Shown: one piece after another, positions 17,370 to 25,284 of the stretch | Numbering within the stretch: the first letter of the stretch is position 1 | Layout of the letters: each line of letters begins with the position of its first letter | Origin: Klebsormidium nitens | Taxonomy: Eukaryota; Plantae; Klebsormidiophyceae | NCBI GenBank assembly: GCA_000708835.1 | Contig: DF236978.1 | Coordinates: 1 to 64,000, forward strand | DNA: 64,000 bases | Direction of reading: 5' to 3' | Program-made: the position numbers and the translations under genes | Notes under the pieces: generated by a model | Told to the model about the DNA's origin: nothing | The model's database searches: none | What the model saw: the letters and a program-made list of their open reading frames with translations, nothing else

Positions 17370-20300
17370 TCATATGCGCCCGTTTCTCAGCCTTCGTCTT
17401 TGTCGGCTGAATTCGAGCAGCACCATGTGCGGGGCCGTGAGCGCCGCGAGCCCCACGAAGATGACCTGAACACTGGCCATCTCGAACGCCGCCACGTGGG
17501 ATGCCAAGATTGGGTGCTGCAAAAGGAACCTCGTCAGATGTTGCCCTTGAAAGGCACCTCCGTTGTCGCCAAACTCTCTTTCTTCGGAGAGCGCTGTACA
17601 CCTCCAAAGAGCGCTTTGGTTTCGCGGAGAGCGCGCACATTACCCTCCCTCAGTAAAGGGGCCACTAATCAGACGAATCCAATGACAGTTGGCGTGGTAG
17701 CAAGAGAAGATAAGTTGCCGCAAAAACTGGACAAGGGATAAGCACGGCGTGAAACCAGATTGAAGGTCAGACTAACACGTGTGTCTCTGGTCAGCGTCCA
17801 GTATTCACCAAGTGCCCCCCTTCTTACCTTGAGCAGCCCCGCAAAGACGGCGAGCGCCACCAGCAGCGTGACACCTGTCACCATCCCGGCCGCCTTGCCG
17901 ACGTAGCGCAGGTCCGCCAGGCTGGCGGGCGTGCTTTCGTCCGCGAAGAACGCGAGCGTATGGCGTAAAGAATGCAGCTGCACCGAAGCGGGAACTGTAA
18001 TCAGCTGCGTGTGTCTCCAGAACTGTCATGAAACGAATCATTGGCTTCGTGTTTATCCAGCTCAACGAATGGACGGATGCAGCTGCACCAGAGTCGTCGG
18101 AGCAAAGTTCAGGATTCGGAGCTGCCCCAAAGCTGCCTCGGAGACCCCCTCGCGCCCAAGCTGTTCAAGTTCGAAGGCTGCGAAGGTGCGCCGCCATATT
18201 GCCCAATACTGGAAGCTGCCAAAGCGCTGTCACGGTGATAATAGGAACCCCGCCTTTTCCAGCTCGGCCGAGGCAGAAACCTCACCCTAGAGAACCACAA
18301 ACACGACCAATACGTGGCCGTTAGGCGCATCTCGAAGTTGCTCGACAATCTGAAGTACTCAGCAGTCGATATTGGCCTAGTCGAAACCAGGCCTCACCGT
18401 ACAGAACGCGAGGAAGAAGCCCAGGAGGGGGGGCGCCAGCGTGCACCCCAGCCCCAGCAGCGCCATCTCTAGCCCGGCCGCGAGCCGCGACTCTCGAGTC
18501 AGACCCGGACCAGACGTCAGCTGTCCTAGTGTCTTCGATGACGTCAGCTCTTCCCGGGGTACGAGCTGCTCTCGAGCTGGGGAGCCCAAATGTGTGTCGG
18601 TGCGCGGCCCTAGGTAGCAGTAGAGGCTTGTGGCGGCGACTGCCAGCGCGGTGGGCAAGGCGAGGAGGGTGCAGAGGTGGGACACGTGGCTGGCCGCGAA
18701 TGGAGGAGCGAGGTGAGAGAAGAGGAGTGACGTCTGCAGGGAAGAGGGTCGTCAGCGACGGAAAGACGATGCCAAGCAGGGTCGTGATGAGACTAGGGCC
18801 ACTCACTTCATTCGACTTGGCGTTTGACTCTCAATCAAGAACATGTATCGAGTGGCTGGTTGCCGAGCTATCCTTCAGCAAGTTCGGAGTCAACACGGAG
18901 ATAAGGAGCACACAATAGCTGTCTGTACTTTGAAAAGTTGCCGGATTTGTGCAAGCAGATGCTTCACGCAGGGAGTCAAATACTTTGCAAAGCAGTAAAA
19001 TCTTAGGATCTCCTTCCAAACTTCCGCCTTTTGGAAGCTCAAATGAGCTGACAAAACGACAAAGCACAGCTCCGACAATGCACGGCTCTTCGATTCGTGC
19101 TTTCGTATGCATCTTCGGACCTGGTTATCTACACCAATGAGCTTGATTCGAAGCTAGGTCGGCTTTTGAGGGAACCTGTATCGGACGAAGTCGAAGGTCA
19201 GAACTTTTCGGCAACACTGTATGACAAACACAGGCACCTTCGTCTCACCTCCTGTTTGTGCAAAATGAAGGGCAGCGTAATGGGTCCCAGGCCTCGGGCT
19301 GCCACCTCTACCCAGTGCCACTGCCCCGGCAACAAGCCTTGTGCATCGTTGGTGCCAAAGTGCCAGGCGCTCGCGGCCAGCAGGCCCGCCAGAGAAGCGC
19401 CCGGGAAGTGGCACCACAGGAACACAACTGGAAGGCAAACGGGCGCTGTTCAGTTTCTGATAGGGACAGGCATTTCCTCAGCTGATCATGCAAAGAAGTC
19501 ATCCGCACTCTTTCGAGGAAAGGCTCAGCCTCGCAATGGCCGAAGGCTCGATTATGCACATCACAACGGATCGGTTCGAGAACCATGAAACACATAGGAC
19601 TTGGAAACTTTCGGCCTTCAGAAACGAGCACGCCCATCTAACTCCAAACTCCAGCTTTCCTAGTACTCTACCAAAGCAATCCTGATTTAGACGGAAGCTC
19701 GACGGGAGCTTGAAAACCTTGAGTTGTGAGCTTCTCTTGACTGAAGCAGAACCCCTTATGGCATTGACATGAACAACACCGCAAACTCTTAGAGCAGCTA
19801 GCCAGCTGACAATCTCCCCTGCGTGCAGCATTAGGGCCTGGGACTCCTCACCTAAGGCGGTGCATGCAGAGTAGGCCGCCACAAAGAGGGCGAGGTTCCA
19901 GGGCTGTGGCCAGGGCCAGGCCTGCTCGCGCATCAGCCCCTGAGCTGTGACCAGGTCCAGAGCACCGTGGGGGACGCCCAAAATGGCAACTCCTAAAGCC
20001 AAAATTGTTAACTGCAAATCAAGGTGTAACACAGGGGGTTAGGACGAGTCAACCGGCAGTGTTATTTTTCAAAGGAATGCAGCTAAGCTGCAGAGAATGC
20101 TTGTGCCGGCTGTAATCTTTTGGCGTGCTATGAGTTAAGGTGAATCAGGAAGCCAAATTCAATAGATGCATCTCATGATACCTCAGAGACTTGCTGATCT
20201 TCTTGTAGGAGGAGAAGGCTCAAGCAAGCGGCCTCACCTGTACAGTTGGGGACACGATTGCTGATCCCGTCAAATAACTGATCAAGAGCAAACCCGTGAC

Positions 20301-20912
20301 CCCAGCAAAAAACTTGGGGTGTATTCGCTGGGCTTTTCTGAGCAGTACCAGGGTCTCCTCAGTGCAAAATGTGCCTGGCTGCAACCCCCCCTCACGGTTG
20401 GCGCCTGCCGCTGCAGGCTCCAGATAAACTGCATGAGCAGCCGCCTTCGTGCAGCGCCGTTCTAATGTTCTCTGGTCACAATGTGCCGTTGCTAAGGACC
20501 GTAGAGCGGAGCCATCCCAGATTTGCTGTGCCTCTACTGTATTCACATTGCAAAGCTCTCTCTTTGTCGCCAACAAACCCCGCTTTTTCCAAGCCTGCCA
20601 CTTGGAGATTTTGCAAACAGTGGAGCCTGCAAATGAGTCCCTTGCTTCCAGATTCTCCCTTCCGTTGACATCCTCACTGAGACTGGGACCGCTCTGCTCA
20701 GGAACCACATTCTGCGGGTGTGTGCGTCTTCTGCAACCGTGACTCTGAAAATTCCTTTTTGTGGCTCCCCCTCCATGTAAGGGCTTCACAGCAAAGGGTC
20801 TGACGCTGTGGCCCAATGTCTCCTTGTAAGCCCTGCTGACGATCGACTCTTCCTGGGCAACACGAATGCTGGGCGTCCCTAATCTAGTTCTATGCAAGCT
20901 GAAGCTCGCCAT
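17370..20912 (-). CDS. blh: Brp/Blh family beta-carotene 15,15'-dioxygenase (retinal-forming), 548 aa with ~200-aa N-terminal extension
   Basis: Exons (minus) 20912-20238, 20011-19852, 19427-19249, 18733-18398, 17977-17828, 17516-17370 join in phase to 549 codons. Family motifs appear in the correct order: LGVPHGALD, SAWHFGTND, RGLGPITLP..H.ET..LF..L, PPLLGFFLAFCTLHSLRH, GLAALTAPHM. The protein is multi-pass hydrophobic. Confidence 0.9.
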
Positions 20913-21626
20913 GCCGATCCGTGAGCATCACATGCTGGAGACTCGACTGCATAGCAATCTCTTTGTTTACCATCCCCTTACTGTCTTGTCTTTTAGTAAG
21001 GACGGAGCAAACGAAGAGGACATTACTTGATGTTCCATGGCGGACGTAGCCGGGGAAGGAGAGCAGAAAGGAGAGAACTCAATAATCTCTTCTCCAGAGA
21101 ACAAACCAGAACTCTTTGACATCCCTTTGACGTTCAGATATCAACGAAAGCGCAGGCAGATCTTCCTCTCGCAACACTATTAGGTGGAACCTGCTGGATT
21201 GAGAAGGGTTCTTCCCAGTTGTCCCTGTGCGCAAGCCATTGGGTTATCGATCTTAATATGGCAATCTGCACTCAAGATGATGCCATTTGGCGCTTTTCGC
21301 CGCGGCGAAGCCTGACGAACCAGCCGCACCGTTGACTGCATGAGCGCCGCACAAAGCCTAGCGCAGTACTCTACACGGCCCTTGTGTACAATCGGGATTC
21401 CATGTACGCACTCGATTGCGTAGGTACGGTAGGAGTCGGGACAGGGTAGGCACCTAGGTACATCAAGGTTCAACTGCTCGGCCTGCGTGTACAAAGCACG
21501 GCGTACGATCATCAGCAGTGCAGTGTACAACTGCTTTTACCAACCTGAGCCGATTTCGATCTGAACCGTCGTCTCGGGATTGCATGCAGATTATGAACCG
21601 TCGATGCACCGGCGGAACCTCGGATC

Positions 21627-21638
21627 GACCACGTGGTC
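21627..21638. promoter_or_regulatory. Palindromic G-box (GACCACGTGGTC) between blh and rhodopsin
   Basis: Perfect 12-bp palindrome containing CCACGTGG, near the middle of the divergent intergenic region. Function is inferred only. Confidence 0.3.
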
Positions 21639-22507
21639 CGAGCTTTGAACGCCAGCTCCAGTGTCGGCCACTGCTCGAGCCAGGCTCCGACCAGTCGGCA
21701 TGTTTTGTGGTAGGCAACGAGGCAACGGCCCCGCGGCCAGCCTGGTGAGATGTGCTGATGCTCATTGACAACTCGACAACTGGCACACAACGTCTCATTT
21801 GAAGCAGACAAATGTCTGTCTGCATTATGAAAGAAACGTGGAGCGCAGCAAAAGGCACAGCTCATCGTCAAATTTACTGCCTGATCATTCATTTATCAGT
21901 GCATCTGAGAAGCCGGCTCCTTCTCTAGCTGCCGAGTCCAGCAGCTTGCGCTTCCACTTCATGCAGCCTTTCTACCTAGCATGAAGGGCACTTTGTGATG
22001 GGTGCTCACTGCTGGGTAGACCCTGTGTCTTCGTTTCTTGTAACCGTAAGCTGCACGGTCGAATGCCTGCCCCCTGAAGTTGATGGCAGTGTATTAAACA
22101 GCAAAGTGTCCATGAGATCGGTGTAAAGCCTGCTTCAACTCAACGCATCTTTCAGCTGCTGAGGCGGCTGTCACGGTCTTTCAACGGACTTTCATTTACC
22201 TGCAGGGAGTCACCGACTTTTAGTGCGAGTTATCGGGCCAGAGCTGATCCAAGCTCGACCAGAAACTTTACCCGATTAGGTCTCGATTACCAGTGCCAGA
22301 TCTGCATGCTTCAGTACACTGGCTGCCAGCAAAACTCTCCATCTTGACGACTGATCTAGTTTGATTTGACAGCACACTCTTACATAGCAACTCTCTGCAA
22401 AAAGCTTAAGTCGCCCACATCTGACAACCTTCCCCACATTCTCGCACTCGCCGCCAGTAGTACGTGACGGGCCAAGTCCAGAGCTAACGCGCAGCACCAC
22501 CGTCACC

Positions 22508-25284
22508 ATGGTGTACTCACACGCTGACGCCGCAGGGTGGACTCTGTACTGGATCACGTATGGCATCATGGCGGTAACCGCGCTCATCTTCTTTGCGATG
22601 TCACTACGGAGACCCATCCAGCAGCGCTCGCATCACTGTAAGCAAAGCTCCTCTATCACTCCCTGAATTTGTCGGATCCTTCCATGGTTTACTCAAAGAC
22701 TGACTTTAGGGGCTCAGAAAGACTTACTGGCAGCATTGTTGTCAGGTCAAATGCATGTGTTGTCTCTGGAACGCCGGTAAAATACCCCAGGATGTGCAAT
22801 TTGTAGGAGGGGGCAAGACGAAAAGGACCCCCAAGAGGATGAAGGTTCTCGGAAGGATCCTCATTCGAAGGTCTACATTGAAATAAGTGATGATTGTGGG
22901 CCTTCGTCATTGGACTCGTAGATTGAGTAGAATTGAGACGAAGTTTGGGCATGAAGAGACTTGGCTTTTGAAGCCTTGAAAACGATCAAGCTCAGGGTTT
23001 CTGAGCGGAGATTGTTGCGACTAATCAAAAACCTGTGTTGGATGCAGATACATCCTTCCTGATCGTTGCGATTGCTAGTCTTGCCTACTACGCCATGGTA
23101 AGAGACTTGAATCGTTGCATGAAACAAAAGTTTAGCGGAGACAGTCATTCGCAAATTAGAGGTTTGTTGTCTCACATTCTGAGTGGAAAGGGATTGTGGC
23201 AAGAAGCTTCGTCTTGAAGTTGTATCTAGGCAACCTGGCTGGCGCCTTCCTGGAGGCTTGATAGAGAGAGCAATGCATGCTCCTCTTCAGGCCAGCAAAC
23301 TGTTCTAAAGTTTACCAAGGATCGCAGTTGAATCCGATCCTGTGGACTGCAAGCAAAGCGAAACTGACGTACTGTTGTCAGTCTGTCCAAGCCTCGCCTT
23401 AGAACTCCAATCTCGTTTCGAATTCACAAGCTGTAGTGCGCGGGAGATTCAGTGGGGCCTTCAGAGTTCAAAGCGAGGTTGCAAGGACTAGACTCAAGCA
23501 TAGTCATTGGCCAAGATAATGACGCAGCGAGCTCAAGCCGAGTCTACACTAAGAGCAACCTTCGCTTTTTCGCCGGCCGGCTCGCTAATCCAACTCGACG
23601 CCCATGCTTTCTGCAGGCTTCACAAGGCGGCAACACCAGGATCCGCGTTTACCAAGGACCGGCTGATTCATACCGTCAGATCTTCTGGGCGCGCTACGTG
23701 GACTGGTTCTTCACGACGCCGCTGCTCCTGCTGGACCTCGTTCTGCTGTCCAACCTGTCCAAGCTCCGAATCGCCGCCATCATGGTTGCCGACATCTTCA
23801 TGATCCTGACCGGGTTGTTTGGCGCCGTGGAGGCGCGCAGCAACAAGTGGGGCTGGTTCGTCTTCGGCTGCATTTTCATGCTCTACATCTTCTACGAGCT
23901 GCTGGTCAACGTCCGGAAGGGAGCGTATGCTCGTGGCGGCCAGCACGGTGGGTGTGCGACCAAGTCCTTATCTTCGGCAGGACGTTTATCTGACTGCCTG
24001 GTTCGATGGTTCACGTTTCTTACCACAGTGCCCGGTACAGTTGGGCCACTGTCCTCCAATATCTCAACCTGCTTGGACCAGAAATGGAAGAACGATATCA
24101 GGCGCCGGAGAGTGGGTCGACTTTTTCGCTTCAAAAGCTTCTGGAACGAACGCGTTCTGCACTAGCATGAAGGGGATGACGGGGGTCAGTATCAGAGCCA
24201 AGTCGTTCGAGGGATCTTCAATGCAGTGCGTCACACCGAAATTGGTTTGCTGTGCAGGCATGCTGTACAGCGTCCTTCTGGTGTGGCTGCTCATCCTGTG
24301 GGTTCAATACCCCGTTGTATGGGGCCTGGCAGAGGGCTCCAGCACCGTATCCTCCGACACTGAGGTAAGCGATCCACACAGCGACTACTGCCGAAGCACT
24401 TGCCAGCGTTCTAATAAATACGGACAGCACTTGCCTCTTGCTCGAGCGTCTCCTAGGATGTTGTTTCGATGTTGATTCACGGAGAACCGTTTGCTTTCTC
24501 TTCTGACGGGATGGATTTCATTCACGTACTCAGATCGCGGGCCCCAGTCTCAGAAAGATGGATCCTTTCCGAGCAACGCGTTGCCAGGACTTTTCCAAGT
24601 CGGTTTAGCCAAGCCACAACTGTAGACAAGCGTTTTTTCGTACCCCATTTTGCAGATTGCTTGGTACGCCGCTCTCGACATCTGCGCCAAGTGCGTCTTC
24701 GGCTTCATCCTTCTCCTGGGCATCGAGTCTATCGACCGCAAGAGAGCCGCCACGGGCTCGTCCAACAAACCGCCGATGCCAGCTGGCACGACCAGGTACG
24801 CTTGCAGTAGAGAGTTTGACCATATGGTGGCCGTCCTCTTTCCCTAAGTGTCCTTTATTGCTTCTTAGATTTGGCGGGGAATGTGCCGGCAGAATAAAAG
24901 CGGCCCTGAAGCTTTGCGTTAAGCTGCTTCACGTCAAATTCTTCATTGCATCAAACCACCTGATCAACCAACCGAACCTTCAACGCTTCACCTCCCCGCA
25001 CGTGAATTTTCTATGAGGGCGTCGACGCCTGATTCCTGGGCGCAAGTAAGAGGGCTTGTAAGCGCATTGTATGCTTCCATTTGTTGTCGAGAGCTGTGTT
25101 TCCAGTGTACCCTCGTAAGAATTGCGGCTACAGAGTCTCGGGTGTCTATGTTCGGATCGGCAAAGACAAGTGAGTCGACTGTTCTCCTGCTGAAGCTGTC
25201 GGCTGGTCGCCTGTGCCTTGCAGGACGGGAGCATCTGCGGCGCCCGCCGCGGCCGCCCCTGAGGTTGTCCGCGACGTTGTCTAA
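22508..25284 (+). CDS. Microbial (type 1) rhodopsin, DTD-motif light-driven proton pump, 272 aa
   Basis: Exons 22508-22637, 23048-23097, 23617-23947, 24258-24364, 24656-24795, 25224-25284 join in phase to 273 codons. Helix C WARYVDWFFTTPLLLLD, helix D ADIFMILTG, helix F LWVQYPVVW, loop AEG...DTE, helix G LDICAKCVFG containing the Schiff-base Lys. Confidence 0.95.

Follow-up and report, generated by a model that had tools for sequence, protein, structure and literature searches.

How a eukaryote might couple the production of a rhodopsin to that of its chromophore is a question raised by two neighbouring genes of Klebsormidium nitens, a streptophyte alga. They lie within the first 64 kb of scaffold DF236978.1 (assembly GCA_000708835.1), the stretch of DNA analysed here and called the window below. 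One gene encodes a protein of the Brp/Blh family (Blh), the other a type-1 rhodopsin, and the two are transcribed divergently. To our knowledge, the route by which green algae produce retinal for their many rhodopsins has not been firmly established. An earlier note, made from the letters of the window, had proposed that the pair supplies a light-driven pump together with its chromophore amid ordinary plant-type genes. The setting stands in part: both genes are flanked by ordinary eukaryotic genes on a scaffold of 347 kb, with a streptophyte alga as the host and not a land plant.

With more confidence than doubt, we favour reading the locus as a divergent nuclear pair of a Blh retinal synthase and an algal-type outward proton pump, with a promoter able to couple them, assembled in the alga. 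Blh would cleave beta-carotene to all-trans retinal, the pump would bind that retinal at Lys218, and a shared bidirectional promoter could couple the production of apoprotein and chromophore. The pair would have been put together within the algal genome from a green-algal-type pump and a Blh with bacterial nearest relatives, and Blh probably supplies other rhodopsins of K. nitens too.

The two genes and their proteins

Both genes could be rebuilt from six exons joined by five GT-AG introns (Table 1). The spliced translations are residue-identical to annotated K. nitens proteins, namely P0246 for Blh, publicly named 'hypothetical protein KFL_000290030' (in UniRef, beta-carotene 15,15'-dioxygenase), and P0001 for the rhodopsin, named 'Bacteriorhodopsin-like protein'. 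Between the two start codons lie 1595 nt (22508 - 20912 - 1). RNA contigs of 2.1-2.3 kb span the whole Blh mRNA, and all five of its junctions (17516|17828, 17977|18398, 18733|19249, 19427|19852 and 20011|20238) are present in contigs from four runs. For the rhodopsin, the junction of intron 1 (22637|23048) is present in RNA contigs, and at intron 2 a loose contig end at 23098 runs on into the first bases of exon 3. The rebuilt models equal the annotation and the RNA junctions agree with them, so that the divergent arrangement, the five introns of each gene and the spacing hold as first described. Both genes are expressed.

Table 1. Coordinates of the genes, transcript ends and intergenic features at the K. 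nitens locus, and of the Coccomyxa pump pairs
Feature	Position	Strand	Details
Gene KFL_000290030, predicted beta-carotene 15,15'-dioxygenase of the Brp/Blh family	17370-20912	minus	548 aa, six exons; gene model and annotation
Blh exons	20912-20238, 20011-19852, 19427-19249, 18733-18398, 17977-17828, 17516-17370	minus	five GT-AG introns
Type-1 rhodopsin gene	22508-25284	plus	272 aa, six exons, bacteriorhodopsin-like DTD motif; gene model and annotation
Rhodopsin exons	22508-22637, 23048-23097, 23617-23947, 24258-24364, 24656-24795, 25224-25284	plus	five GT-AG introns
Blh 5' untranslated region, extent covered by RNA contigs	20913-21247	minus	contig ends 21157, 21166, 21192, 21247 (four runs)
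Rhodopsin 5' untranslated region, extent covered by RNA contigs	21830-22507	plus	contigs from 21830 (X5, X7) and 22040 (X5) into exon 1
Gap without RNA contig cover, candidate shared bidirectional promoter	21248-21829		no contig piece there
Palindromic G-box CCACGTGG	21629-21636		inside the RNA-free gap between Blh and rhodopsin
C. subellipsoidea C-169, CsR and RPE65-family gene	L003:3873-13668		head-to-head
C. elongata, CsR-type pump and RPE65-family gene	L008:3988-13405		head-to-head; 325 bp between annotated coding ranges
Coccomyxa sp. Obi, CsR-type pump and RPE65-family gene	L009:3693-13772		head-to-head; 536 bp between annotated coding ranges

The Blh family is mostly prokaryotic, and an assembly artefact or bacterial contamination might be suspected. 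We give this explanation no credence: spliceosomal introns in both genes are confirmed in RNA, the 347-kb scaffold carries ordinary eukaryotic genes, and the same arrangement occurs on an independent metagenome contig (L002).

The assignment to Brp/Blh was borne out by profile hidden Markov model searches, in which the protein scored 115 bits against PF15461 (cut-off 28), over profile positions 2-264 of 267, and 140.7 bits against NCBIfam TIGR03753 (cut-off 95.25). It aligns collinearly with bacterial Blh. H240, H301, H452 and H456 align with histidines invariant in five full-length bacterial Blh, and the C-terminal PHM motif retains H530; the four conserved histidines of the family are thought to bind iron. 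The membrane domain comprises residues ~196-548, with hydrophobic stretches over residues 201-537 as in a multi-pass membrane protein, and the predicted fold matched a bacterial BCD cluster with TM 0.70/0.81.

Two parts have no counterpart in bacterial Blh: an N-terminal extension of ~195 aa, encoded by the exon at 20238-20912, and a loop insertion of ~40 aa (residues ~390-430). Conservation of both in the L002 orthologue is poor, the alignment there being limited to residues 177-227, with 49% identity. The first 20 residues are rich in Ser, Thr and Arg and hold zero acidic residues, a composition compatible with a plastid transit peptide; such a peptide would place Blh where beta-carotene is.

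These additional parts could indicate that the homologue makes no retinal but cleaves another carotenoid or plays a regulatory, Brp-like role, in which case the locus would not be a chromophore-supply unit. We regard this as improbable, as the match to the whole Blh profile is collinear and above the NCBIfam subfamily cut-off, all conserved histidines are kept, and the gene is under purifying selection. Moreover, the characterised members of the Brp/Blh family are beta-carotene 15,15'-dioxygenases. As judged from its sequence, the most likely activity of the K. nitens enzyme is cleavage of beta-carotene at the 15,15' bond, with all-trans retinal as the product.

The rhodopsin scored 143.8 bits against PF01036, the seven-helix Bac_rhodopsin domain, over residues 11-228, and the identification of a proton pump of the DTD type was upheld by this search together with the kept residues. 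The motif RYVDWFFTTPLLLLD (RY.DW..TTPLLLLD) supplies R86, D89, T93 and D100, whose bacteriorhodopsin counterparts are R82, D85 (the acceptor), T89 and D96 (the donor); D212 of bacteriorhodopsin has its counterpart in D214. In WVQYPVVW (WxxYPxxW) we found W185, Y188, P189 and W192, and in DICAK (DxxxK) D214 and K218, the Schiff-base lysine of helix G. Among solved structures the closest relative is CsR, a proton pump of Coccomyxa (PDB 6gyh), with 43% identity over 256 residues, and RYVDWFFTTPLLLLD aligns between the two. We infer that the protein is a bacteriorhodopsin-like outward proton pump binding retinal at Lys218 and that it would pump protons in vivo. According to a preprint, the voltage indicator 2Photron is built on 'KnR', a rhodopsin of K. 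nitens that is treated there as a proton pump and whose pumping a grafted mutation blocks; KnR, given there without accession, is probably the rhodopsin of this locus.

Transcripts and the gap between the genes

The RNA contigs leave a gap between the two 5' untranslated regions (Table 1), and RNA depth was zero across 21280-21677 in 4/4 runs. By these contigs, the 5' ends of the Blh and rhodopsin mRNAs lie at most ~580 bp apart, and a common bidirectional promoter is possible because the mRNA starts are this close. Runs X5-X7 yielded essentially complete mRNAs of both genes. The word shares, which measure assembly and not expression level, were 0.42-0.47 (Blh) and 0.22-0.26 (rhodopsin).

The gap holds a palindrome, CCACGTGG, that resembles the G-box of light-regulated plant promoters. 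Exactly one CACGTG was found in each of the five intergenic regions between a Blh or CCD gene and a rhodopsin gene, always as CCACGTG; in C. elongata the site falls within the annotated CCD coding range. Over the whole window CCACGTGG is over-represented, with seven matches (587, 17492, 21629, 36925, 39097, 50908 and 52588) where shuffled sequence would give 0.68. The octamer probably serves the K. nitens genome as a general cis-element, and because of this window-wide excess we treat the G-box as a lead and not as evidence. A scan of the sequence for bacterial-type promoters and terminators, a method not applicable to a eukaryote, gave nothing notable.

Coccomyxa pairs and the weight of chance

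If the pairing has a function, related pumps elsewhere may be expected to adjoin a gene for a retinal-forming enzyme as well. In 3/3 Coccomyxa genomes checked, the CsR-type pump gene stands head-to-head with a gene for a carotenoid oxygenase of the RPE65/CCD family. A conserved exon of this oxygenase matched, among solved structures at E<0.01, only the apocarotenoid-15,15'-oxygenase (ACO) of Synechocystis, which forms retinal. In Coccomyxa sp. Obi both flanking genes are unlike those in the other two species, and the pair is kept. The idea of a pump encoded beside its chromophore supply, as put forward in the earlier note, has passed an independent test in three genomes, with an unrelated CCD-type oxygenase as the partner. 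The Coccomyxa pairs suggest that the pairing is functional rather than due to chance.

More tentatively, and with a likelihood that we would place somewhat short of even, green algae may share a unit of a pump and a retinal-forming oxygenase under a bidirectional promoter, in which the enzyme slot is filled by Blh in Klebsormidium and by an ACO-like CCD in Coccomyxa. If this two-enzyme reading is true, the parallel would have arisen by convergent assembly or, within an ancestral pair, by non-orthologous displacement, and the long-unidentified retinal-forming enzymes of green algae would be named. The pairs nominate such enzymes by genomic association, Blh in Klebsormidium and the ACO-like CCD in Coccomyxa, and we consider this parallel the part most worth following up.

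The annotation of the Coccomyxa oxygenase seems incomplete in one species. The RPE65-family gene of C. subellipsoidea C-169 is annotated as 487 aa, apparently too short at its 5' end. Upstream, RPE65 N-terminal exons were found on the minus strand at L003:8542-8691 and L003:8919-9185; the open reading frames there encode the N-terminal motif of RPE65 (48 bits) as well as a segment that the orthologues of 578 and 668 aa share.

The explanation that competes most directly with a coupled pair is a chance or inert neighbourhood, in which Blh acts as a general retinal supplier for all rhodopsins of K. nitens (channelrhodopsins, enzyme rhodopsins and the pump) without shared regulation. We hold this to be unlikely, though with real weight. 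With one Blh, two neighbours, a handful of rhodopsins and a gene number that we take to be ~16,000, fewer than 1 in 1,000 genomes should show a rhodopsin neighbour. The K. nitens adjacency is a post hoc find, and the Coccomyxa check amounts to one prediction at one locus of similar prior improbability. The finding of a predicted retinal-forming enzyme beside a related pump, there with a non-homologous enzyme, and the distance of at most ~580 bp between the mRNA 5' ends also speak against chance.

The conservation of the pair bears on both sides. On a Joint Genome Institute (JGI) metagenome contig of 65 kb, L002, from a diverged relative of Klebsormidium, orthologues of both genes agree with those of K. 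nitens in exon structure and stand head-to-head as well, so that the synteny sought for the pair does exist. Over the conserved exons of both genes, the synonymous divergence (dS) from K. nitens is ~1.1 and the non-synonymous divergence (dN) ~0.11, with dN/dS ~0.10; introns and intergenic DNA are unalignable. Blh and the rhodopsin are under purifying selection in two well-diverged species.

Several observations weigh against a coupled unit and in favour of chance. On L002 the pair is followed by Tim17 and lipoyl synthase, syntenic with K. nitens. Because these unrelated neighbours are syntenic too, retention of the pair is not proof of selection for it and may reflect inertia. Orientation alone is uninformative, as the earlier note had cautioned: the annotated order is RSN1-type channel, Blh, rhodopsin, Tim17, lipoyl synthase and arginyl-tRNA synthetase on alternating strands, and all six genes annotated here belong to head-to-head pairs. 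Furthermore, Blh was assembled in more RNA runs than the pump; in X25-X27, X12 and X13 it is near full length, and the rhodopsin is absent or partial. This hints at a wider expression of Blh, as a general supplier would show, and the expression of the two genes does not appear to be tightly coupled. The co-regulation first proposed as probable is supported in part: both genes are transcribed in shared libraries and diverge from a gap that spans ~580 bp at most, but Blh was assembled in the larger number of runs. Moreover, no conserved non-coding block was found between the Blh-rhodopsin intergenic DNA of K. nitens and that of L002, which could not be aligned.

Two other eukaryotic rhodopsin loci likewise lack an oxygenase neighbour: no Blh or CCD gene was found within 10 kb of a fungal-type rhodopsin locus (L004-L007), nor within 10 kb of the algal-type rhodopsin of an intron-rich eukaryote (L013-L017). 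At the latter, a second rhodopsin fragment lies ~4 kb downstream of the algal-type rhodopsin (L013:10001-14267 and L016:5715-9891), possibly as a tandem pair.

If two green-algal lineages do set one kind of pump head-to-head with unrelated retinal-forming enzymes, this would be an unusually clean case of selection for the coupling of chromophore and apoprotein in eukaryotes, where operons are unavailable. Under the favoured reading the adjacency would be selected for and the two genes would be co-regulated.

Origins of the two genes and comparison with known systems

The earlier note had left two scenarios for the origin of the pair, acquisition of both genes together by horizontal transfer or assembly in place. 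A quick maximum-likelihood tree of 93 rhodopsins joined the K. nitens rhodopsin to two metatranscriptome sequences (99% support). This trio nests in a group of eukaryote-type sequences shared with the Coccomyxa clade (support 90%, unresolved within). Two fungal clades and the bacterial clades fall outside the group, the bacterial split having 99% support.

For Blh, the best relatives of the full domain among those compared are bacterial, at ~95-100 bits, and the nearest ESM Atlas clusters are all bacterial. Exon 3 of Blh (59 aa), searched against 1.84 billion representative proteins, gave one close relative, the L002 orthologue (84%), followed by bacterial Blh at 45-51% and 35-42 bits. Its matches to P0117, a bird repeat protein, and to P0123, a bacterial protein of 1264 aa that lacks a Blh domain, were discarded as spurious. 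That the nearest relatives are bacterial is a statement of search ranks, within a comparison that covered the L002 orthologue and bacterial Blh, and the gene may also have come to K. nitens by way of another eukaryote.

Among the closest relatives of Blh is P0116, which belongs to a rhodopsin-lycopene cyclase-blh operon on a bacterial metagenome contig (L010:5904-8948). An operon of this rhodopsin-crtY-blh type could have been the source of both genes by a single horizontal transfer, with the introns gained later. We consider this highly improbable: the K. nitens rhodopsin shares only 26% identity with its counterpart in the operon as opposed to 43% with CsR, and the tree sets it with the algal pumps, apart from the bacterial clades by a branch of 99% support. 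The check for a shared donor gave no support for one, the pump being placed with algal pumps and the Blh search ranks pointing to bacteria. As Blh and the rhodopsin have different nearest relatives, import as one unit is unlikely. Of the two scenarios, co-acquisition in a single transfer lost ground and assembly in place is favoured; as far as sequence comparison can tell, the two genes probably came together within the algal genome and did not arrive as a pair. The locus also shows a bacterial-type membrane enzyme that has become fully domesticated in the nucleus of a streptophyte, where its gene carries five introns and encodes an N-terminal extension.

The prokaryotic clusters, namely haloarchaeal bop/brp/blh and the rhodopsin-crt-blh operons, likewise place a Brp/Blh gene (PF15461) beside a retinal-binding ion pump and encode apoprotein and chromophore supply together. 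Unlike these operons, the K. nitens pair consists of two separate genes with five introns each, diverging from a common gap. Compared with the operon on L010 in particular, the K. nitens pump is of the eukaryotic algal type and its Blh carries the 195-aa extension.

In eukaryotes, carX/carO of Fusarium similarly couples an opsin gene in the nucleus with that for a retinal-forming carotenoid oxygenase. The Fusarium cluster comprises four genes, including an RPE65/CCD-family oxygenase and carotenoid synthesis genes, whereas K. nitens has a two-gene head-to-head pair with the unrelated Blh family. The Coccomyxa CsR locus shares the head-to-head arrangement of pump and carotenoid oxygenase, but its partner is of the RPE65/CCD family and not Blh. 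A matched, compact retinal synthase could also serve optogenetics in hosts that lack retinal.

The novelty implied by the earlier note was too high. Both K. nitens proteins are already public, prokaryotes and Fusarium have known clusters of opsin and retinal-enzyme genes, and a voltage indicator has already been made from a rhodopsin of K. nitens. Our literature search found no paper on the adjacency of blh and rhodopsin in K. nitens or on the CsR/CCD pair of Coccomyxa. According to the parts of the two papers available to us, the Blh family also occurs in the nuclear genomes of cryptophytes, dinoflagellates, chytrids and Thecamonas, which are rich in rhodopsins (PMC10016063), and in Guillardia theta nitrogen depletion induces blh along with several rhodopsin genes (PMC7714340); those parts report no blh-rhodopsin gene pair. 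The K. nitens protein itself is listed, as A0A1Y1HL64 (548 aa), in the Blh dataset of Rius et al. 2023, where it is the sole green-lineage entry and receives no discussion in the text.

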